Assembly: GCF_001194135.2 (NCBI RefSeq)
Contig: NC_069005.1
Coordinates: 11,383,635 to 11,421,349, forward strand
Length of the DNA stretch: 37,715 nt
From: Octopus bimaculoides
Taxonomy: Eukaryota
Direction of reading: 5' to 3'
Below, piece after piece: positions 3,058-37,715 of this stretch (position 1 is its first letter; each line of letters begins with the position of its first letter). The notes beneath the pieces are model-generated. The model was not told where the DNA came from. It saw only the letters and a list, made by a program, of their open reading frames with translations, and did not search any database. The position numbers and the translations under genes were made by a program.

Positions 3058-3091
<34 letters not shown>

Positions 3092-3339
3092 TTGCGAGCT
3101 TAAGAACTGTTGTTATAATAAAACACCTGCAACCATTGTAATTAGAGTTACTATGGTAATTATGATGAATGTAAGGGCGATAACTCTAAATTCTTGGAAC
3201 AAGTTGTAGCAGGAATCGAGCTATCATCGACAAACCAAACTCACGAACTTAGTCTTTCCGGCAATGACCATCCTGTCGTATTTTCAGGACTACACCGTCT
3301 AATGAGTCTTTTCTGTTTTCGATTCTTTCCTTCTTTCTC

Positions 3340-3370
<31 letters not shown>

Positions 3371-3977
3371 GCCAGAAGTATTAAAGCGTCGGATGGATTG
3401 CATAGTTTCCAATCATACTTTCCAATTATTTTCGTTCATAACAGTCCAAATCATCTTTTATTTTTGCCATTTTGGGGTTCTTAAATCAAATGACAAGTCC
3501 TGGGGTGATTTCTTCTTCTTCTTCTTCTTCTTCTTCTTCTTCTTCTTCTTCTTCTCCCCCCCCCCCTGTGTCTCTTCGTGCTCTCCCGTCTCTCACAAAG
3601 AATAGAAAGGACACATTAAACAACATGGTCGCGGATATAAAAGAAATGTGATAGCTACGAACGGAACGTCTGTTTTGCATATTTCCACCGTTAAATAACC
3701 ACATACACATTATTAGAAATATAAGCACAACGACAATTTGCAAGGAATAATGTAAAATTTTATTTGTAGCAAAAACAAAAAAAAACATCATCCTTTGGTG
3801 CATAGGATCTGATGATGTAAAACAATAGGTACGCTGCATAAGTGCTGCAATTGGTAACCCGTTAGGATCCAGCTTCACAACGGAGGCTGGAACTATGGAA
3901 GCGTAGCAGGATTCCAAATCAGCGGGTATAAATTAAAGGAACAGAAAAAAAACCCAAGGCAAGTGAAGCTTATCAGA

Positions 3978-4084
3978 TCATTTTGAATTACAGTAAAGGT
4001 GACTGAAATTAGGAAAAGTAATAGTACTTTAATTAAAATATTTTAATTACAGTAAAGGTGACTGAAATTAAGGAAAAGTAGTAG
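3978..4084. repeat. About 60-bp tandem repeat (two visible units) abutting a gap
   Basis: aattacagtaaaggtgactgaaatta(a)ggaaaagta(a/g)tag occurs twice, immediately before the N run at 4085. Confidence 0.7.
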
Positions 4085-4963
4085 NNNNNNNNNNNNNNNN
4101 NNNNNNNNNNNNNNNNNNNNNNNNNNNNNNNNNNNNNNNNNNNNNNNNNNNNNNNNNNNNNNNNNNNNNNNNNNNNNNNNNNNNNNNNNNNNNNNNNNNN
4201 NNNNNNNNNNNNNNNNNNNNNNNNNNNNNNNNNNNNNNNNNNNNNNNNNNNNNNNNNNNNNNNNNNNNNNNNNNNNNNNNNNNNNNNNNNNNNNNNNNNN
4301 NNNNNNNNNNNNNNNNNNNNNNNNNNNNNNNNNNNNNNNNNNNNNNNNNNNNNNNNNNNNNNNNNNNNNNNNNNNNNNNNNNNNNNNNNNNNNNNNNNNN
4401 NNNNNNNNNNNNNNNNNNNNNNNNNNNNNNNNNNNNNNNNNNNNNNNNNNNNNNNNNNNNNNNNNNNNNNNNNNNNNNNNNNNNNNNNNNNNNNNNNNNN
4501 NNNNNNNNNNNNNNNNNNNNNNNNNNNNNNNNNNNNNNNNNNNNNNNNNNNNNNNNNNNNNNNNNNNNNNNNNNNNNNNNNNNNNNNNNNNNNNNNNNNN
4601 NNNNNNNNNNNNNNNNNNNNNNNNNNNNNNNNNNNNNNNNNNNNNNNNNNNNNNNNNNNNNNNNNNNNNNNNNNNNNNNNNNNNNNNNNNNNNNNNNNNN
4701 NNNNNNNNNNNNNNNNNNNNNNNNNNNNNNNNNNNNNNNNNNNNNNNNNNNNNNNNNNNNNNNNNNNNNNNNNNNNNNNNNNNTATATATGTATGTATAT
4801 ATATATATATATATATGTATACATTTACGTACACATACATACATACATATATGTATTTATATACGTATATATATCTACACACACACCGGGTAAGTGTGTT
4901 CATATATCTGAGTGGGCGTGTATGTGATTAAAATCACTAATCAAATAGAAGCTACAGGCTGTA

Positions 4964-5220: not shown

Positions 5221-5314
5221 TTATTTTTCTGGTTTGGCTTTGATCCAGGCGGTTAACCGAGGCGCGTTTTCCGAAGTGCATTTTGTTGATATCTTACCAA
5301 TATTTTCCCATAAC
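5221..5314 (-). CDS. STC: Stanniocalcin-like gene, copy A, last coding exon
   Basis: Acceptor tttgcgttgcag|G completes the phase-2 codon (CT+G = Leu). Encodes LWENIGKISTKCTSENAPRLTAWIKAKPEK-stop (94 nt) with the tenth core Cys. The paralogue at 33282-33375 has the same length and stop position. Confidence 0.88.
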
Positions 5315-8559: not shown

Positions 8560-8786
8560 AGTCTGTAATGTTGTGATTTTGATTTCTCAATGGGCCGTTG
8601 AAAAATCTTCCACAGTCCCTGGCGATTTTCCCAGCCGACTTCACAAAAATCATTAGCCAGGTAACAAGTTTGTTGTATGGCCAGGGTGCTTTCCAAGACA
8701 GAATTACAATCGAGTGTGTCAGATTTGTAGAATTCAGTCAGTAACTTCATGAAACATCCAATTATTGAATTGATCCAAATTTTCCC
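8560..8786 (-). CDS. STC: Stanniocalcin-like gene, copy A, internal coding exon (equivalent to STC exon 3)
   Basis: Acceptor ttttacag|GGG, donor CT|gtgagta, 227 nt, phase 0 in and phase 2 out. Encodes GKIWINSIIGCFMKLLTEFYKSDTLDCNSVLESTLAIQQTCYLANDFCEVGWENRQGLWKIFQRPIEKSKSQHYRL. Cys spacing 16/14/7 is identical to STC1 C98-C114-C128-C135. The paralogous exon at 36215-36441 has the same length. Confidence 0.92.
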
Positions 8787-14279: not shown

Positions 14280-14870
14280 TTGATGTCGCTGGGTGTCAAA
14301 ATGCCGACCTCACGACTGCTGCTCAAAGCTCTCTGAACACTGTGAAGGTTGTAAGACGTGACATGGACAGCTTCAACGGCGGCTACAAAGTTGTGAACTG
14401 TGACCAACGGAAGGGACACAGCAGACTTTCTGACTGCGTTCCTACGCCGAGATACTGCCCCACATCTCCAAACAGGGACTGAGGTTCAATTCAGACGGCT
14501 ATGTAAAGCAGCTGGAGAATGTGGCAAATCCCTGGCTGGAGAGGGTTGCTAGCAGATGACCATACATGTTACGCAAAGATTCAACTCCTTGCCATACCTT
14601 CGGAAAGAGTTAGAATTGGTTGTCGGAAAAATTCTGCGTCTTTACCAGCCCTAATTTCTGGGCCTCCTAATTCTCTTCGATTATAAGCTCATGTTTGGAC
14701 GCGGTTGAGACAGACGCCAAACGATCTGCGTACAACACCAAGGCCTCGCCAAGTTCAAGAAGGTGTTCGAAGATCTTCTCAGAGACAGTGAGGAACGCAT
14801 GTGCCAGGTTCGGCACCCGTCTTAAGGCCTTAGTAAAAGGCGAGGGAGGCTATTTTGAGTAAAGTGTTAT
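14280..14870 (+). mobile_element. Degenerate Tc1/mariner-superfamily (maT/DD37D-like) transposase fragment
   Basis: GLRFNSDGYVKQLENVANPWLERVASR*PYMLRKDSTPCHT ... KGEGGYFE* matches the catalytic-domain C-terminal half; contains stops and frameshifts. Confidence 0.75.
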
Positions 14871-15058
14871 CTCCCAGCAATATTCTAGTTGATATTTTTG
14901 GATTTTTTAAAAGGTAATTTATTTTTGGATGAGATATTTTGTCTTTCACTTTTATACAAACTGTCAAAATTTAGCCCAAACATCCTGTACAAACTTTATT
15001 CACCCTTTCTCATTCTATTTCTAACGCGCAATTCTTTCCACTTAGAAGTTTCACTTAC

Positions 15059-15219
15059 TACATTATTCAAAGTTTTTGCCACTCTCAAAGCTCTTCTACA
15101 TTGCCTATACGAGGTTTCCTCTTTCTTTTTTTCTGGATGACAAGGGAACCTCTCATCCAAACATTTGTAAAACTTGCAGTTGACATTTTCACTATGTTTG
15201 AGACATTTCGGGGTAACAT
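15059..15219 (-). CDS. STC: Stanniocalcin-like gene, copy A, internal coding exon (equivalent to vertebrate STC exon 2); 5'-partial gene
   Basis: Acceptor ttttcag|AT, donor GTA|gtaagtg, 161 nt, phase 1 in and phase 0 out. Encodes xVTPKCLKHSENVNCKFYKCLDERFPCHPEKKKEETSYRQCRRALRVAKTLNNV. Five Cys spaced 9/5/7/14 versus human STC1 C45-C54-C59-C65-C74 (9/5/6/9, recalled sequence). Splices in frame to 8786-8560. Confidence 0.88.
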
Positions 15220-15617: not shown

Positions 15618-15824
15618 AAACAGATAAAAGATAAATAAAAAATGAAATTTTGGCGGTGGGGTCCAATCGATTATTTTATTACTAAGAGGGGAAAACAATA
15701 GGAAGTGAGGTTGAAAGTGGATGATAGAACATTATATTAACGAGAGGAAATAAATATACATCAGTCTATATTTTGGAATTAAAGGTAAGAAATTGTTCTC
15801 AAATATTGATACTTATTTTTTCTA

Positions 15825-15950
15825 CTCGGAAAGGATGAAAGGCAAAGTCGACCTCGGCAGAATTTGAAATCAGAAAGTAAAGAAGGACGAAACGCGGCTT
15901 AGCATTTTGCCCGTCTTGAGAACGATTCTGTCAGTTCACCGCCTTTACAA
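15825..15950 (-). mobile_element. tRNA-derived SINE fragment
   Basis: Reverse complement of the 2089/2322 SINE head (gtcgacctcggcagaatttgaaatcagaa...aacgattctgtcagttcaccgcc). Confidence 0.7.
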
Positions 15951-15963
15951 GCATATATAGAGA

Positions 15964-17179
15964 CAGGGTTTGGACAAAATAATGGAAACACCTTACAATT
16001 TCAAACAAATTAATTTTAATATGGGAATAAGACCGCCTTTGGAAGTAATTACAGCTTGAATTCTCCAAGGTATGGACTCATACAAAGTTTGAATTGTTTC
16101 CAAAGTAATGTTTGTCCATTCTTCAGCTAAAACAGTCTCCAGGTCTTGTAGTGATGATTATGGAGGATATCGACTCCTTAATTGTTTTTCTAAAATACAC
16201 CATAAATGTTCAATAATACTGAGATCTGGGGTCTGTGGTGGCCAGATAAGATGTTCAACTTCACTAGAATGTTCCTCGTGCCATTCAATAACAACTTTAG
16301 CTGTGTAAATTGGTGCATTTTTATACTGGAAGGTTGCGTTTCCCTCCGGAAACAGTTCCGCAACCATAGGATTAATTTGATCAGATAAAATGCTTAAACT
16401 GTCTTGACTATTAATACTGCCATGAAGGGAAACTATTGAGCCGGTGGATTTCCAAGATATAGCTCCCACCAACTCCAGATCATCACAGATCCCCTCCATG
16501 TTTAACAGTTAGAAGAAAGCAGTCTGGGTCAAATGCCTCTTTTCGCTGTCTCCACGCGTATATTCGGCTGGAGGTAGGAAATAAGGTAAAGGATGACTTG
16601 TCCAAGAAAGTAACACTCTTCCACTGCTCTAGGGACCAATTTTGTAGGTTCTTACTCCACTCTAAATGCTTTGCAACGTTTGTTTTTGAATGTAGTGGTT
16701 TTCTGTTTGCAGCCCTCGCGTGAAATCCGGCTTTGTGCGGCTCTCGGTGAACAGTTTTTATGGAAAATGGGTTCTCAAGGTAGTCATTAAGCTCAGCAGT
16801 AATTTGGGGAGCTGTACTGTTGTGATACTTTCTAACAATTCGCGTAATAGTCCGGAGTTTTGTTTCAACGAGGAGGTTTTTCCCTCTTTCTCAAAAGCTG
16901 TCATTATTTTCCAGACAGTACTTCTTGATACACCAAACATTTCGGCTGTTTTCGTTACGCTAGCGCCTGCCATACGAGCACCAACAATTTGACCTCTTTG
17001 AAAGTCCGATAGATCTGTCATGATATCTGAAAAGAAACAGCGATTTTAGCAAACCATATCAAGCAACACTAATAATAAATCAAAAGCATAAAAATAAACA
17101 AGCTTTAGACGGTTTTATAGATATTTCCAAATCATGGTGCTATGATGCTAGGTGTTTCCATCATTTTGTCCAACCCCTG
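15964..17179 (-). mobile_element. Tc1-like DNA transposon with both terminal inverted repeats; transposase inactivated
   Basis: Left TIR cagggtttggacaaaataatggaaacacc (15964-15992) and right TIR ggtgtttccatcattttgtccaacccctg (17151-17179), two mismatches, followed by TA. Transposase pieces: MTDLSDFQRGQIVGARMAGASVTKTAEMFGVSRSTV, WKSVTFLDKSSFTLFPTSSRIYAWRQ, FQYKNAP and WPPQTPDLSIIEHLW. Confidence 0.92.
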
Positions 17180-18490
17180 TATGGACACTGGACGAGTGCA
17201 GGACGGTTCCTTTGCCCTACGCACAATTCGGTTCCTTTGTCTCCGCATCATCAGCCACGGCATGCCCAGTTCTCCACGCAACGGCTTCTGACAGCAAAAT
17301 GGACCGTCTGACAAGTGGTACCCTTCCTTTCCACAAGAAGCAGAAGAGCAAGTGCACCAGCCTGTTTAGCCATGAAGTGGGGCAAGGGAAGACAGTCACG
17401 TGGTAGTATATGACGGATGTGATGTACGCATTCGTCACCTCCGCCCGACCTTTCAAGGACAGCTTCCTCTCAGCCCATTTCTGGGTGAGACTGTCCACCT
17501 TGTCTGTCACCTCTCCCTAGTTCTTGTCCACCTGAAGGTTCGGACTAAACCAGACCCCGAGCTACTTAACCGGTCCTTCCGTCCAGCGCCCTACAATGCT
17601 GTCGTTCGATTTGAACCTGCCTCTGCAGGTGCCGAACTGCAGGCCCACTGATTTCTCTTGGTTAATCATTGCTCTTGTCACCACTTCTTATTCCCTTTGC
17701 ATAATGCCGACGATCTCTATTTCAGAGACATTCGACACTATCCCGGTGACATCGTTCGCATACGCTGACACACCTCTTCTGCATCCCAGCTCACGCGGGA
17801 TGCCTCCCGAAACATCCAGTTTCCGCAGTAATGGCTCTAGTATCAGTAGAGAAGGGGTGAGGGTGGGCATCATTGACGGACCGAAAGGTCGATGCCAAAC
17901 GATTTCGACAAGGGTTCATTTACGTTGACCACCGAACAGATGTTGCTATACATTGCAGCGATCCAGCCTCTGAAAACGAAACCAAAGCCAGCCGCTATAA
18001 AGACAGCCTCCAAGTACCGATGGTCGATCCTAACGAAGGCTTTCGACTAATCCAAATTGATCAGCGCCCCATCCATGCCAGGTTCTTTACCAATTCTCTC
18101 TATGATGTATCGCATGAGGTGGAGGTTGTCGTAGATAGATCTGTTCGGGATAACGCAAGTCTGCGCATCATCCACCATTCTGGCCATGACAAGGGACAAC
18201 CTTTTTGCTAATACTTGGCCAAAATTCTGTAATCTGCAATTAGCAGAGTTACAGGCCTAAAGTTATCAAAAGTATCCCCTTTGTTTGGGTCCTTTTTCAG
18301 TAGCTTCACCGCACTTTGGCTCACAGATATGGGAATTCTTCCGTTCTGCTGCCAGTTGTGGCAGACCTATACCAAAATTTCACCGAACAAGTCTGGTATA
18401 TGAATATAACGTTCGAAGGGCAGACCATCCACTCCCGGAGAATTTTCCCTCAAGCACCTGTCCAGTGCGTCTCGTGCATCAGGGAGTTTG
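17180..18490 (-). mobile_element. Tx1/L1-clade LINE reverse transcriptase fragment, 5'-truncated
   Basis: ENSPGVDGLPFE; LINLD*SKAF; LEPLLRKL...VSAYANDVT (YADD-like); QKWAERKLSLKGRAEV...FLWKGRVPLVRRSI. Confidence 0.9.
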
Positions 18491-19734: not shown

Positions 19735-19905
19735 GTTGGAGAACTGCTTTGAGGAACTTTTAGTCGAATGAATCAATCCCGATACTTACTTTTTGTTAAA
19801 CCTAGTTCTCATTCTTATGCTGAACTGCTAAGTTATGGGGACATAAACACACCAACACCAGTTGTCAAGCGGTAATTGGGGGGCCAAACAGTCACAAAGA
19901 GACAC
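19735..19905. mobile_element. Short interspersed repeat (same family as 37495-37660)
   Basis: Shared ttagtcga..aatc.a.ccc...actta, gaactgctaag/gaaccgctagg and ggggacataaacacacc...ggttgtcaagc motifs, ending in a CA-rich tail. Confidence 0.6.
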
Positions 19906-20536
19906 ATTCACACAGATATATGTATCTAATTATAAATCTCACAGAGAGACTTAAGCAGTGTTACGATAAAGCAGTTATATACTCTCACATTAAGTTGACA
20001 GTATACAACTACTATATATATATATATATATATNNNNNNNNNNNNNNNNNNNNNNNNNNNNNNNNNNNNNNNNNNNNNNNNNNNNNNNNNNNNNNNNNNN
20101 NNNNNNNNNNNNNNNNNNNNNNNNNNNNNNNNNNNNNNNNNNNNNNNNNNNNNNNNNNNNNNNNNNNNNNNNNNNNNNNNNNNNNNNNNNNNNNNNNNNN
20201 NNNNNNNNNNNNNNNNNNNNNNNNNNNNNNNNNNNNNNNNNNNNNNNNNNNNNNNNNNNNNNNNNNNNNNNNNNNNNNNNNNNNNNNNNNNNNNNNNNNN
20301 NNNNNNNNNNNNNNNNNNNNNNNNNNNNNNNNNNNNNNNNNNNNNNNNNNNNNNNNNNNNNNNNNNNNNNNNNNNNNNNNNNNNNNNNNNNNNNNNNNNN
20401 NNNNNNNNNNNNNNNNNNNNNNNNNNNNNNNNNNNNNNNNNNNNNNNNNNNNNNNNNNNNNNNNNNNNNNNNNNNNNNNNNNNNNNNNNNNNNNNNNNNN
20501 NNNNNNNNNNNATATATATATATATATATAATGAAA

Positions 20537-20790: not shown

Positions 20791-20799
20791 CGCAAGAAA

Positions 20800-20965
20800 T
20801 ATATATACACGACGGGTTTCTTTCAGTTTCCGTCTACGAGAGTTACTGAGAAGTCATTGGCCGGCCCGACGCTATATTAAAACATACTTGCCTAAGGTGC
20901 CATGCCGTGGTACTGAACCCAGAACCATGTGTTTGAGAAGCAACTTCTTACCACATAGCCATGCC
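20800..20965 (-). mobile_element. tRNA-derived SINE fragment
   Basis: Minus-strand caggcatggctatgtggtaagaagttgcttc...ggttcagtacc head (A/B-box-like). Confidence 0.55.
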
Positions 20966-22465
20966 TGCATCTATTACTACTCAGCTATTCTAGTGCATTG
21001 ATTACATGTTCATGGAGTACCGGATTTTTAGCAATAATTGTGACTTCCGGAACCTTTTGATACCACCTCGTACGTATGTATATTATATTTGATGATGCGT
21101 GTCATTTATACATTACATTATACTGGAAATCGTCACAAAGATTGCTCCATGAGACATTCAACAAAATATCTCGTAAGATACCTTGAAATTGAGCGCAATG
21201 TTTACTTGCACCATATTTAATAACGCATGGACACTTTCAACATTTGTCCCGATTGTTAGTTGACTTTGCTTCTGAGGAGGTAATATGGTAGTGTCTGTGC
21301 GGGACGAGTAATACTGGCCACGTTGGAAGACTCAGTGCTCAGGCCAGTGATGCTCGAATATACTCATTTGTGCAGGAAACTCATTGTGATGCGCTTACAG
21401 AGAAAGGAAGATGCTGTTTGTATTCATAATAGGAAAGATAGAGTGACGGTCAGTGGTCAGTGAACTGAAAAAGAAAGTAACATACGCTTCGTAATGAATA
21501 TGCCTGATATACCAGAGAGGTAGACAAGGATGAGGTTAAACTGCTTGACAAGGATTAAAGAGAGGGAGGGTTACTCAGCGTCGTGTACCTCACTCGCTCG
21601 NNNNNNNNNNNNNNNNNNNNNNNNNNNNNNNNNNNNNNNNNNNNNNNNNNNNNNNNNNNNNNNNNNNNNNNNNNNNNNNNNNNNNNNNNNNNNNNNNNNN
21701 NNNNNNNNNNNNNNNNNNNNNNNNNNNNNNNNNNNNNNNNNNNNNNNNNNNNNNNNNNNNNNNNNNNNNNNNNNNNNNNNNNNNNNNNNNNNNNNNNNNN
21801 NNNNNNNNNNNNNNNNNNNNNNNNNNNNNNNNNNNNNNNNNNNNNNNNNNNNNNNNNNNNNNNNNNNNNNNNNNNNNNNNNNNNNNNNNNNNNNNNNNNN
21901 NNNNNNNNNNNNNNNNNNNNNNNNNNNNNNNNNNNNNNNNNNNNNNNNNNNNNNNNNNNNNNNNNNNNNNNNNNNNNNNNNNNNNNNNNNNNNNNNNNNN
22001 NNNNNNNNNNNNNNNNNNNNNNNNNNNNNNNNNNNNNNNNNNNNNNNNNNNNNNNNNNNNNNNNNNNNNNNNNNNNNNNNNNNNNNNNNNNNNNNNNNNN
22101 NNNNNNNNNNNNNNNNNNNNNNNNNNNNNNNNNNNNNNNNNNNNNNNNNNNNNNNNNNNNNNNNNNNNNNNNNNNNNNNNNNNNNNNNNNNNNNNNNNNN
22201 NNNNNNNNNNNNNNNNNNNNNNNNNNNNNNNNNNNNNNNNNNNNNNNNNNNNNNNNNNNNNNNNNNNNNNNNNNNNNNNNNNNNNNNNNNNNNNNNNNNN
22301 NNNNNNNNNNNNNNNNNNNNNNNNNNNNNNNNNNNNNNNNNNNNNNNNNNNNNNNNNNNNNNNNNNNNNNNNNNNNNNNNNNNNNNNNNNNNNNNNNNNN
22401 NNNNNNNNNNNNNNNNNNNNNNNNNNNNNNNNNNNNNNNNNNNNNNNNNNNNNNNNNNNNNNNNN

Positions 22466-22500
<35 letters not shown>

Positions 22501-22556
22501 TGTCTGTATCTTTACATACATACATATATATGTATATATATAAATAAACTTTCTCA

Positions 22557-22594
<38 letters not shown>

Positions 22595-23242
22595 CGTATG
22601 TATACCAACGCACTCGCTCGCCAGACAACCCGCTAACTCCATTCATTAGTATTCTGTCAAGTTGACAACACTGATAAATTAGCTAAAGAAATATTAAAAG
22701 GTATATTGATAAAATTAGTTTACTTCGGCTTGTATTATTTATTATTTCCTATTTGTCAAAGAATTTAAATGATTGGGCAGTCTTTTGGGAAAGAAATAGA
22801 GCCGGCTTCTATGTAAACGTATTATCTTCCCTCTGTGGTAACTTTGCATCGATAAGCCAGGTTCTTAATTTTACATCTTGAGTCCAACGTGCTTTGTCTT
22901 TAGCACTGTATGTGAGTTTGTGTGTGTGTATATAAGTTTGACCCTCCTTGCTGACCTGCATAGAATGTCTCACAAAGTGGCCTGACATCATTCCACTGAT
23001 AGATACCACAATGGAAACTCAAAAAACCCTGATTCATCCCTGGTTAACGAGTTATGGTAAACTACCTATGATCACGAGCCGCCGACACATCTTCTAAGTT
23101 GTAGACACGCTTTCTCAAGAGCTTATTCGCCTGCGGCCAAACTCATGGCTGAAAGTACTTTTCAATGCCCAATGCAGAGATCGTTTCTATAATAGAAAGA
23201 AGACTAATTGGAATTTGGATAACATACAACAGGATTGTCTTA

Positions 23243-28229: not shown

Positions 28230-30195
28230 CAAGACCTTAAGTTCTGGTGGATGGTGAACAAAGCAAGATCATCTCGAACCTGACAGTAGCTTCAATATTC
28301 TTAATATGTTTTTCAAAGCCCTTGGAAACTGCTCGTAATGCTCCAATTACCACCAGTATCACCATTACTTTCCTCATGCCCCATAAATTTCCTATCTCAT
28401 CCCGCAGTGGCTGGTATTTCTCAATCTTTTCTGTTTCCCTACATTTCACTCTCGAATCACCAGATATTGCAACATCTATTATCTTTATTTCTTTTTCTGC
28501 TTTATGGATGAGTACGATATCTGGTCGTCTCGCCTCTATGACTTGGTCGCACTGCGTGTTAAAATCCCAGAGTATTTTATAATGTTCATTTTCTCTTAGT
28601 CCCTTTGGCTTGTGTTCATACCATTGTTCAACTCTCTCTAGGTTTGCTTTACCGCACAACAGCTAGTGGACATATCTAGCCAAGTTGTCGTGTCTCCTTT
28701 CATATTCGCGTTGTGCAAGCTTACAGCACTTACTAACAATATGGCTTATACTTTCTCCCTTCTCAGAGCACATCCTACACTGTGGCGAGTCAGTGCTTTT
28801 ATCAATGTGATATTTGGAGCAGTTTGTTCTGATAGCTTGTTCTTGAGCGCTGCACACTAATTCCCCAGTAGGCCCTTTTACGTATCCTTTCTGCAGCCAT
28901 TGCCAGGTTCTATTTCAATCAATCTCATCTTTATTCTTCAAGAACTGACTGTGCATTTTCTTGTCCTGCCAAATTTTCTTCATCTGCTGTCTCTGGTCTT
29001 ACTTAAATTGCGTTGGATCTACAGTTTCGTTCACTTTTAAAGTTCCCTGCATTTTCACTGATTCAATCATTTCTTCTTTACTCCCATTGATATACCAAGC
29101 CAGGTTATTCTCCTGTTCCCTTACACAACCTTCACAACACACTAGTCCCCGTATTCTTCCTCTTTACATACAATCTTGATACACCATTCTTGGGGTGTAG
29201 TTCCTTGTTCATTGTCATTAGCATACGTATTCTCCAGACTCTTGTAGTTCATGCATCTTCCAAAATACTATTCCTGCCCCATATCTCATCAAAGCAGCAG
29301 CCCACGTATTAATTGCTCTAATCTTATAGCGGCCATTTAGCTTCGATTGGCGGGCAATCCGAATTCTCCTCAAATATTCTTTCTTGTTCATGTCTTTCAT
29401 CTTGTGTTCATTCACCTTATCTTTTTCAATGACACCCAGGTACTTATATCTTTCCTCTCCGACTTCCTTTATAGTTTCACCATCTTCAAGCTTGATCCCA
29501 TGGCTTTTACTGATTTTACTCCTTTTGAGAATCATTACACCACATTTCTTGACCCTAAATTCCATGCCAATATCTTTGCTAATCATCTGTACAGTTGCCG
29601 ACAAACACTCAGTTTCTCCCTCAGTCTTAGCGAATTGCTTTAGGTCATCCACAAACCACAGGTTGTTTACTTTCACCCTACCTAGTATGTACCCCACACG
29701 CATCTTTCTTAAAACGTTCGTTAGTGGTAGTATGCAGACAACAAATAGGAGAGGCGTGAGACTGTCCTCTTGAAAGATTCCTCTTTTGATACTTACCTCT
29801 CCCAGCTTATTTCCCTATGCTGTGAGTTCAGTTCGCCACGTTGTCATTGAGTTTTGTATTAACTTCAGGATATCATGTAAGACCTTCAGTATTTTAAGGC
29901 ATTCAATAATGCACGAGTGTGGGACCATGTCATATGTTTTTCTGTAGTCCACCCATGCCATCGCCAAATTTTTGCGTCTCTTCTTGCAGTCAACCAGGAT
30001 AGTCTTATCGATTAGTAATTGATCCTTAATTCCTCTGTTCTTACGTCTACACCTTTTTTGTTCCACTGGTAGTAGATCGTTCTCATCTAGGTACTTACAG
30101 ATGCTGTTTGATATGATGGCCATCATCAGTTTCCACATAAGTGGCAAACAAGAAATTGATCGGAAATTTCCACTGCTGCCTACGCCAGGACAAGA
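28230..30195 (-). mobile_element. R4/Dong-like non-LTR retrotransposon ORF (RT, CCHC zinc knuckle, REL endonuclease), degenerate and 5'-truncated
   Basis: [13 protein letters not shown]; [14 protein letters not shown]; LWFVDDLK (YxDD-like); YKYLGV; CRMCSEKGESISHIVSKC...RRHD; LWDFNTQCDQVIEARRPDIV...IIDVAIS...EKIEKY. Confidence 0.9.
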
Positions 30196-30299
30196 ATCAC
30201 AAACATCACCAGCACCGGAAAAACTACCAGCAACAACACCAAAGACATTAACCACCGTAGGATCAAGCAAGGATAGTTCTCCCACCCGACTCACACCAA

Positions 30300-31075
30300 A
30301 CGACTCGGCACTTGGAAAGGCAATTCAATGCCGTCCAACAGCGTTGTTGAGCGCTGGACGGACGGACCGGTAAAGTTGCTTGTGGTTTGGTTCGGACTAA
30401 ACCTCCAGAATTGGGATGAGGCGATAGCAGGGTAGCCAGTCTCACCCAGAAATGGGCTGGCAGGAAGCTATTACTGACAGGTCGAGCGCAGGTGGCGAAA
30501 GCGTACGTTGCGTCCGTCATCTACTACGCTTGACCGTCGTGGCTTGCCCCCGATCGCACCTCGCCAAGTTAGAACGCCTTTTCTTCAAATTCCTGTGGAG
30601 GGGACAGGTTCCATTGGTGAAGTGGTCCATCTGCGGTAAACACTCTCTACGCGGATGGCTGGGTGTACCGTGGCTAATGATGCGCAGACATGCGCTGAGG
30701 CTGCGGTATCTCCAGATATTCTCTCTAAACGCCTAATAGGTGTGGTCGCCATTTGTCAAACAGGCTTTTCTACAGCTTGTCTCCTCGACTGAGTTGTAGT
30801 CCTTGGTCAAGAAAAGACCGAGGAAGGGTGACCAGCATCTACAAGGCGGGCAATGCGATCAGTGGAACATCCACTCTTGAATTCTATAGAGGGCTAGGGG
30901 AGGGAAAGAGCGATGACGCACCTGGAGAGATGCCAGGCGTTGACAAAGTCGAACTAACCAGTTTTCAGGAGGACTTTCGAGCCGGAGACGAGGGATAACT
31001 TCCGAAAATCCCTAGCTTGGCAGTGCTACCGGGGAGCACTGCCGGTTTGAGATAAGCTCTACAATCACGGAAGTG
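30300..31075 (+). mobile_element. Tx1/L1-clade LINE ORF2 fragment
   Basis: [27 protein letters not shown]; LTVVACPRSHLAKLERLFFKFLWRGQVPLV...GVPWLMMRRHALRL. Same family as 17180-18490, opposite strand. Confidence 0.85.
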
Positions 31076-31678
31076 CTGTCAGACGGACCCACCCGAAAAG
31101 CGCGCAAAGCCGCCACCACCACCACCATCAAAAACAACAATAATAACAACTACAAGTTCGAAATCAACTGCAGCAGCAGCAGAAGCAGCAGCATTTGCCA
31201 GCTTAAGAATCGTTGTTATAATAAAACACCTGCAAGCATTGTAATTAGAGTTACTATTGTAATTATGATGGATGTAAGGGGAATAAATCTAAATTCTTTG
31301 AGCACGATGTAGCATGAATCGAGCTATCATCGACAAACCAAACTCACGAAATTAGTCTTTCCAGCAATGACCATCCTGTCGTATTTTCAGACATATTATA
31401 TCTGGGACTACACCGTCTAATGAATCTTTTCTTTTTCGATTTTTTCTACCTTTCCTTCTATTCTTTTCTTTCTTTCCTTCTATTCTTTTCTTTCTTTCTT
31501 TCTTTATTTCTTTCTTTCTTTCTTTTTTTCTTTCTTTCTTTCGGAAGTATTAAAGCGTCGGATGGATTGCTTAGTTTCCAATTATACTTTCTAATTATTT
31601 GCCCTCATAAAAGTCCAAGTTATCTTTGATTTTTGCCATTTTGGGGTTCATAAATAAAATGACCAGTCCTGGGGGGTG

Positions 31679-31844: not shown

Positions 31845-32047
31845 GTGCAGGTCTATATGTAAGAGATGAGGAATTATGTACATTTCTTACAATATTTACA
31901 TTTTGACGGATATTTGTCCTCATATTGTTTGTTGTTAACACAACATTTTGGCTAATATACCCTCCACCCTTCATCAGGTGTCTTGGGGAAATTTCTAACC
32001 TGTGTTCTCATTCTTAAGGTATTTCTCGATGTTGTCGTTGTTGTTAT

Positions 32048-32086
<39 letters not shown>

Positions 32087-32365
32087 AACTACTACTACTA
32101 CACCATATGCCCACGGGCATATGGTGTAGTGGTTAAGAGCGCAGGCTACTAACCCCAAGATTCTGAGTTCGATTCCAGGCAGTGAACTGAATAATAACAA
32201 CAACAACAACAACAACAATAATAATAATAACAACAACATCGAAAAGTACCTTAAGAGTGAGAACCCAGGTTCGAAATTTCCCCAGGACACCTGATGAAGG
32301 CTGGACAACAAACAAGATGAGAACAAATATCCATCAAATGTATTTAATGTGTATAGTCCTGTATA
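31845..32365. mobile_element. Head-to-head inverted dimer of a tRNA-derived SINE (fold-back), present only in duplication unit B
   Basis: Plus copy from 32115 has A box tggtgtagtggttaa and B box gagttcgattcc. The left arm (about 31895-32035) is the reverse complement of about 32233-32345. Centre is a perfect 16-bp palindrome (32097-32130). Absent at the matching unit A position (about 3620-3640). Confidence 0.75.
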
Positions 32366-33281: not shown

Positions 33282-33375
33282 TTAATGTTCTGCTTTGGAG
33301 TTGATCCAGGAGGTTAATTCAGGGGCATTTTTCGTTGTGCATTTTGAAGACATCATTCCGAGATTTTTCCATAAC
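33282..33375 (-). CDS. STC: Stanniocalcin-like gene, copy B, last coding exon
   Basis: Acceptor tttgcgttgtag|G, 94 nt. Encodes LWKNLGMMSSKCTTKNAPELTSWINSKAEH-stop; 17/30 aa identical to copy A. Confidence 0.88.
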
Positions 33376-36214: not shown

Positions 36215-36441
36215 ATCATATAATAATCTGATTTTGTCTCGTTCATGGGCCGCTGGAAAATTTTCCACAGTGCCTCGCGATTATCCCAGCCGACTCCGCA
36301 AAAATCATTAGACGTGTAACAATGCTGTTGTATATTCTTGGCTTTTCCGAAGACAGAATTACAATCGAGTGTTTCAGCTTTGTATAGTTCAGTCATTTCC
36401 TTCATGAAACATGCAACTAGTGAATTGATCCAGATTTTCCC
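36215..36441 (-). CDS. STC: Stanniocalcin-like gene, copy B, internal coding exon (equivalent to STC exon 3)
   Basis: Acceptor tttacag|GGG, donor AT|gtaagta, 227 nt. Encodes GKIWINSLVACFMKEMTELYKAETLDCNSVFGKAKNIQQHCYTSNDFCGVGWDNREALWKIFQRPMNETKSDYYMM. 47/76 aa identical to copy A, no indels or stops. Confidence 0.92.
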
Positions 36442-37494: not shown

Positions 37495-37653
37495 ATCGAC
37501 CGCCTTTAGTCGAGCAAATCGACCCCGGGACTTAATCTTTGTAAGCCTAGTACTTATTCTATCGGTCACTTTTTGCCGAACCGCTAGGGGACGGGGATAT
37601 AAACACACCAGCATCGGTTGTCAAGCAATGCTAGGAGGACAAACACAGAGACA

Positions 37654-37660
<7 letters not shown>
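37495..37660. mobile_element. Short interspersed repeat (same family as 19735-19905)
   Basis: ttagtcgagcaaatcgacccc...gtaagcctagtacttattctatcgg...ggttgtcaagc followed by (CA)n. Confidence 0.6.

Positions 37661-37715
<55 letters not shown>

Follow-up and report, generated by a model that had tools for sequence, protein, structure and literature searches.

The segment at positions 8560-8786 of the window (the whole 37,715-nucleotide stretch of DNA that was analysed) is the third of the four exons of an unannotated stanniocalcin-like gene, called copy A here, on the minus strand, and amino-acid replacement in this exon proceeds about as fast as silent change (omega 0.8–1.0), a pace that few proteins show. 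A sequence-only reading had taken the segment for a coding exon that diverged faster than its flanking non-coding DNA, as a sign of diversifying selection; this was not confirmed, since the adjoining non-coding DNA has diverged just as much. We think it probable that the pattern arose from a burst of amino-acid change after a gene duplication, together with weak constraint outside the cysteine scaffold and mosaic gene conversion between the copies. The replacement excess lies mainly on the post-duplication branch and in exon 2.

The window is 100% identical to Octopus bimaculoides GCA_001194135.2 (chromosome CM046625.1, ~11,383,635-11,421,349); it is eukaryotic DNA with microsatellites and ten N-gaps, and the features of the locus are collected in Table 1. 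In copy A, exon 2 codes for (D)VTPKCLKHSENVNCKFYKCLDERFPC...TLNNV and thereby for five of the scaffold cysteines, and exon 3, opening with GKIWINS, is translated as GKIWINSIIGCF...SQHYR with four of the ten. In both copies the AG/GT splice sites, the reading frames and all cysteines were checked and are intact, as the sequence-only reading had stated in arguing against pseudogene decay. A pseudogene was rejected for copy A, whose exons 2-4 are open with all AG/GT sites intact and whose omega against the O. sinensis copy A is 0.41 (exon 1 being unseen). Exon 1 was not found in the window by tblastn. It most probably lies, with the signal peptide, in the assembly gap at 21601-22465, because the locus is colinear with that of the O. 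sinensis orthologue, in which exon 1 (L003 10001-10106) sits between blocks aligning to window positions 22481-22699 and 20799-21134. The homologue searches returned no database protein equal to copy A, so the gene is regarded as unannotated, and the loss of exon 1 in the gap would account for its absence from the O. bimaculoides annotation. Copy B is a tandem paralogue located ~18 kb upstream of copy A. Its exon 2 is intact and located outside the window; no exon 1 was found for it, and this exon is probably in an assembly gap outside the window (L001 gap 3488-4476), which would explain why the NCBI model of LOC106879340 (P0001) is shortened and takes a Met inside exon 2 as its start.

Table 1. 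Features of the stanniocalcin-like copies A and B and of the DNA around them; divergence is that between copies A and B of O. bimaculoides.
Feature	Position	Strand	Divergence, A vs B	Remarks
Copy A intron 1, start	21045..21600	-	3.8%	96.2% identical to copy B, 89.6% to O. sinensis B
Copy A intron 1, 3' end			41/149, 27.5%	
N run (assembly gap)	21601..22465	.		Most probable site of copy A exon 1
Copy A exon 2	15059..15219	-	23.6%	161 nt; splice sites; 87% identical to the P0101 exon
Copy A intron 2, first ~350 nt	14707..15058	-	12.5%	Gene-conversion tract
Copy A intron 2, next ~620 nt			14.7%	
Copy A intron 2, last 381 nt			67/381, 17.6%	Fisher p=0.29 vs exon 3
Copy A exon 3 (flagged)	8560..8786	-	48/227, 21.1%	227 nt; phase 0 at its start, last codon split after 2 nt; acceptor AG, donor GT; matches positions 82-154 of the Pfam profile PF03298; O. 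sinensis orthologue of this exon in LOC115224535
Copy A intron 3, first 80 nt			20/80, 25%	Fisher p=0.53 vs exon 3
Copy A intron 3, last 228 nt			14.5%	
Copy A exon 4 (last, TAA stop)	5221..5314	-	23.4%	Encodes LWENIGKISTKCTSENAPRLTAWIKAKPEK and the tenth Cys
3' flank of exon 4			44/183, 24%	
Non-coding block downstream of copy A stop	3062..3505	.	8-14%	Holds the earlier 92% yardstick
Copy B counterpart of downstream block	31165..31674	.		Downstream of copy B
Copy B exon 3	36215..36441	-		NCBI LOC106879340; 100% tblastn match to P0001
Copy B exon 4 (TAA stop)	33282..33375	-		LOC106879340
LOC106876188, exon 2 / exon 3 pairs	L004 2563/4070, 24924/26389, 42570/46316			Three separate copies

Copies A and B belong to an array of at least nine stanniocalcin-like genes spanning ~210 kb of CM046625.1. 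The tally follows the listing of LOC106876188 (three copies), LOC128250809, LOC128250800, LOC128250786, LOC106876190 and copies A and B; the first four loci are placed at 11.24-11.45 Mb of the chromosome, and LOC106876190 is a further O. bimaculoides paralogue listed without a chromosomal position. The array paralogues are 33-59% identical to copy A. The 333-aa model of LOC106876188 covers three separate stanniocalcin-like copies (L004, CM046625.1 11241549-11291408) and looks like a fusion annotation. An O. vulgaris model (P0002) is likewise a fusion, with exon 2 of gene B joined to gene A. Thus, one annotated gene is shown to merge three gene copies, and an intact unannotated stanniocalcin-like gene is added to the O. 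bimaculoides catalogue. Copy A is a new member of a known family, and the tandem array, now mapped with at least nine genes and with members evolving near omega = 1, is without an earlier detailed description.

Both copies are members of the stanniocalcin family, that is, small, probably secreted proteins of ~195 aa with ten cysteines and an all-alpha fold, encoded by four-exon genes. The Pfam profile PF03298 (Stanniocalcin, gathering cut-off 23 bits) scores 38.6 bits with exons 2-4 of copy A, 37.0 bits with copy B and 49-50 bits with the orthologues. Word-indexed homologue searches gave merely 1-5 proteins, and the family became visible via an exhaustive search, which found 99 relatives. Ten cysteines (C6, C15, C20, C27, C41, C65, C81, C95, C102 and C142) vary little or not at all among 15-26 family members; the same holds for W58, Y74, W106 and W132 in the family alignment, and a ten-Cys pattern defines the stanniocalcin family (Roch & Sherwood 2011, PMC5654410). 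The family profile matches human STC2 chains (E=7e-12), and the cysteines line up: C6-C102, nine of the ten, pair with STC2 cysteines in an alignment that ends before C142. Moreover, the AlphaFold model (pLDDT 93.3, pTM 0.87) is all-alpha, and its four best PDB fold matches are all STC2 (probability 1.00, TM 0.50-0.63), the next matches having a probability of 0.2 or less.

The octopus proteins are therefore homologous by profile and fold to vertebrate STC1 and STC2 (human STC2: PDB 8A7D, 8A7E, 7Y5Q and 8HGH), with which they share ten cysteines in a matching pattern, the all-alpha structure and the four-exon gene, and the octopus orthologues are probably secreted like them. However, the octopus proteins are only ~14-19% identical to STC1 and STC2, are ~195 aa long without the long C-terminal tail, have no 11th, dimerising cysteine, and are encoded by a fast-evolving tandem array of at least nine copies, whereas STC1 and STC2 are two dispersed genes. 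The O. sinensis orthologues begin with MWRFLAVLLMSFVLAIKG..., which is hydrophobic by eye; the corresponding exon 1 of the copies in the window would fall in assembly gaps. Homologues from other molluscs (Lottia gigantea, Patella and Liolophura) are 25-29% identical to copy A and have the same length class, the ten-Cys core and a signal peptide, but in these limpets and the chiton one or two proteins matched per species, a number of matches and not a count of gene copies. Tandem expansion is not mentioned in Roch & Sherwood 2011 (PMC5654410), and the octopus array is a lineage-specific expansion. By analogy with stanniocalcins, copies A and B may act as secreted ligands or inhibitors.

In O. 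sinensis, the orthologue of copy B is P0003 (locus L002) and that of copy A is P0101 (LOC115224535, locus L003), located ~30 kb downstream of the former. The gene order, B and then A, is common to O. bimaculoides and O. sinensis, the introns are colinear, and intron identity is 84-92% between orthologues versus 73-78% between paralogues. Of the informative sites in exons 2 and 3, 35 unite the orthologues and none unites the two copies of a species. The A/B duplication is therefore older than the split of O. bimaculoides and O. sinensis, and A and B in both species have kept open frames, splice sites and ten cysteines.

The counts on which the sequence-only reading had relied were reproduced. 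The exons at 8560-8786 and 36215-36441 differ at exactly 48 of 227 nucleotides; the 29 replaced codons among 76 are 28 full codons plus the split one, with 40 codons identical and 7 changed only synonymously, and where the residue is unchanged and its codon four-fold degenerate, which applies to 14 codons, the copies never differ. In the last exon there are, as counted before, 5 synonymous-only codons and 13 replaced (plus 1 split), and the non-coding pair 3090-3287 and 31193-31390, which is 92% identical, differs at 16 of 198 positions without gaps. This block is no true flank, as it lies 5.3 kb from exon 3 and 1.7-2.2 kb past the stop codon. The unconverted non-coding tracts of the gene are 24-28% diverged versus 21.1% in exon 3, the lower values (8-12.5%) being those of converted or younger tracts alone, and a significant difference from exon 3 is seen for just the 92% block (p=0.0002) and a single converted tract of an intron (p=0.007). 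Exon 3 is thus not accelerated. From the picture of a fixed Cys scaffold under diversifying selection, the small, probably secreted Cys-scaffold protein and its fast replacement remain; the argument for diversifying selection is not supported, as the 92% block has a younger history (see below) and omega of exon 3 does not exceed 1. Four-fold sites changed unevenly between the copies (0/14 in exon 3, 4/6 in exon 4 and 6/30, or 20%, in exons 2-4); the probable cause is chance, or else the border of a converted stretch. The non-coding figures for the O. sinensis copy A around exons 3 and 4 (37-40% 'divergence') were set aside, because repeat insertions in that copy disturb the MAFFT blocks.

The low divergence of the downstream block has a history of its own. 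Among the three sequences available for it, the distances are 11.3% between copies A and B of O. bimaculoides, 13.4% between the copies A of the two species and 11.2% between the O. bimaculoides B and the O. sinensis A, and the 10 kb that follow the O. sinensis B gene contain no counterpart. Since the distance between paralogues is not above that between orthologues and O. sinensis B lacks the block, its 92% identity reflects a younger coalescence or gene conversion; the block coalesces near the time of speciation and is no neutral baseline. The sequence-only reading had itself named recent gene conversion or a young repeat in the flank as a finding that would undo its case, and a younger history or conversion is what the distances give. 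Two other accounts of the block were rejected: it is no dispersed repeat, being single-copy in ~250 kb of sampled octopus loci, and no constrained DNA, its divergence between orthologues (11-13%) being that of ordinary introns (10-12%). In addition, the whole window, the downstream block included, has no Rfam match at the gathering threshold, and ARAGORN called no tRNA.

Conversion has left its mark at other places of the two genes. The start of intron 1 (21045-21600) is a 5' tract homogenised within the species. In the first ~350 nt of intron 2 (14707-15058), none of the informative sites groups the copies by orthology and 12 group them by species (Fisher p=1.3e-12 vs the rest of the block), and the O. 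sinensis copies A and B are only 2.8% diverged there. In O. sinensis, conversion also reached the 3' half of exon 4, where copies A and B show 0 synonymous differences. It follows for tandem arrays that conversion gives non-coding tracts of differing ages, and that an exon more diverged than its flank is by itself no evidence of selection.

Codon models were fitted with our own maximum-likelihood implementation of GY94-F3x4 to four sequences, namely copies A and B of O. bimaculoides and O. sinensis. Between copies A and B of O. bimaculoides, omega of exon 3 is 0.82 by the Nei-Gojobori method and 0.95 by maximum likelihood (p=0.90 vs 1), that of exon 4 is 0.51 (Nei-Gojobori), and that of exons 2-4 together is 0.92 and 1.01 by the two methods, respectively. 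In exon 2 it reaches 1.81 (Nei-Gojobori) and 2.3 (maximum likelihood), with 33.5 non-synonymous and 4.5 synonymous differences; the signal of omega>1 is thus strongest in exon 2 across the gene, above that in the flagged exon 3. Between orthologues, omega is 0.41 for A and 0.57 for B (Nei-Gojobori). On the four-taxon tree M0 gives an omega of 0.77, and the internal, post-duplication branch has an omega of 2.2 versus 0.59 on the terminal branches (p=0.016 vs one ratio), although the excess of the internal value over 1 does not reach significance (p=0.12). The fit of M1a is much better than that of M0 (lnL -1462.7 vs -1472.9), which shows that constraint varies among sites; the constrained class has p0 of 0.37-0.44 and omega0 of 0.10-0.14. 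As the average is near neutral while ~40% of the sites are constrained, the remaining sites must be at or above neutrality.

Diversifying selection is possible, but in its pervasive form, acting on a hypervariable surface of the toxin, immune or recognition type so that the exons are truly faster than neutral DNA, we regard it as unlikely. The best evidence for it comes from the site models: M2a is preferred over M1a for exons 2-4 (p=0.0076), exon 2 (p=0.0025) and exons 2+3 (p=0.0009), where ~30% of the sites are placed at omega ~3.4 and 15 sites have a posterior above 0.9. The test is calibrated under its own assumptions, as in a parametric bootstrap under M1a 3 of 60 replicates lay above the 5% chi-square point and 0 of 60 reached the observed value. 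For exon 3 alone, the exon for which such a check had been proposed, the same comparison on the four sequences gave p=0.14. Furthermore, the signal hangs on a single long branch: it is lost without O. sinensis B (p=0.25) and kept without O. bimaculoides B (p=0.006). In exon 3 (L002 60303-60529), that branch has ~2x the length of the other three, and it also shows an elevated dS and elevated divergence over the ~90 nt at the start of intron 3, which makes conversion from a third paralogue a live confounder that could mimic positive selection in O. sinensis B. The local contrasts that speak for pervasive selection are those of exon 2, whose omega of 1.8-2.3 goes with 23.6% divergence versus 12.5-14.7% in the intron just downstream, and of the B orthologues, in which exon 3 is 20.7% diverged versus 7.4% in the intron just upstream; also, the mature-peptide exons have diverged in spite of homogenisation at the signal-peptide end, and stanniocalcin-like toxins are described in a 2026 preprint on octopus venom glands (see below). 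Against this, the low-divergence introns are accounted for by conversion, unconverted non-coding DNA is equally or more diverged than the exon, omega of exon 3 is not above 1, and the orthologue values mean net purifying selection since speciation.

Pure relaxation, in which redundant tandem copies drift near-neutrally and retain the disulfide scaffold alone with no adaptive part, is very unlikely: a pairwise omega indistinguishable from 1, the redundancy made plausible by many paralogues in the array and the missing annotation of copy A, which shows no other sign of use in the data examined, agree with it, but both copies have kept frames, splice sites and ten cysteines in two species, selection is still acting after the split (omega 0.41 for A and 0.57 for B), and relaxation, which cannot raise omega above 1, would hardly produce an internal-branch omega of 2.2 or the outcome of M2a. 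We infer that the replacement excess reflects adaptive divergence of the paralogues rather than relaxed constraint alone.

The explanation that we consider probable, a post-duplication burst with weak constraint outside the scaffold and mosaic conversion, would run as follows. After the duplication, the mature-protein exons 2 and 3 would have gained many replacements (omega ~2 on the post-duplication branch vs ~0.4-0.9 later), with the ten cysteines, several Trp and Tyr residues and the splice sites held fixed throughout; many replacements on a fixed scaffold would bring the exon average to about the neutral rate. Gene conversion has repeatedly homogenised A and B at the 5' end near exon 1 and at the start of intron 2, probably also in the downstream block, and in O. 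sinensis in the 3' half of exon 4, and because of this exchange some non-coding tracts look far slower than the exons. Later, the proteins would have come under moderate purifying selection.

In snake PLA2 isozymes and conotoxins, the mature-peptide exons diverge more than the introns or signal exons. The octopus pair resembles them in that the 5' or signal end, like some intron stretches, is conserved or homogenised and the mature-peptide exons have diverged much further on a fixed Cys frame. However, omega of the pair is ~1 here and not clearly above 1, and the intron conservation comes from patchy conversion and is not uniform. A recent preprint reports stanniocalcin 'doppelganger toxins' of the superfamily SF5 with high expression in the posterior salivary gland of octopuses, O. 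bimaculoides included (bioRxiv 10.64898/2026.02.02.703354). Copies A and B are, like these toxins as described there, stanniocalcin-like and probably secreted proteins of O. bimaculoides, and their rapid change and tandem arrangement are in keeping with recruitment to venom; the venom link of the two copies is a lead only. It is doubtful that they are venom-gland stanniocalcin mimics in which conversion keeps the signal end and introns uniform and positive selection diversifies exons 2 and 3. If this were true, the array would be a cephalopod example of hormone-mimic toxin diversification, and if array members are the venom components of the preprint, the locus would offer a tractable case of hormone-mimic toxin evolution.

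The window also contains several mobile elements and repeats. A Tc1/mariner-type DDE transposase fragment lies in intron 1 of copy A (16158-16499, minus strand; Pfam DDE_3, E=3e-9), and broken reverse-transcriptase-like ORFs at 28237-30294 (minus strand; RVT_1 with E=1e-6 and 1e-3, both short of the gathering cut-off) are probably the remains of a LINE that lies between copies A and B. A G+C-rich repeat, whose ORFs have no Pfam match, occurs at 17238-18451, 30301-31070 (inverted) and 784-1171 with copies 66-72% identical, and four times in O. sinensis L002, with ~6.4 kb spacing, in the 45-kb first intron of gene B. An insertion at 31963-32305 is specific to the region downstream of copy B and is bounded by an 87-nt inverted repeat (31963-32049 / 32219-32305, 88.5%); its core is tRNA-like by eye (GGTGTAGTGGTTAAGAGC...GGTTCGATTCC-like), and ARAGORN and Rfam call nothing in it. 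Finally, two short interspersed repeat families, one at 37499-37715, 20799-20975 and 19758-19928 and the other at 1894-2254, 2323-2460 and 15807-15945, are probably SINE-like elements, and both recur many times in O. sinensis L002 and L003 at 75-90% identity.
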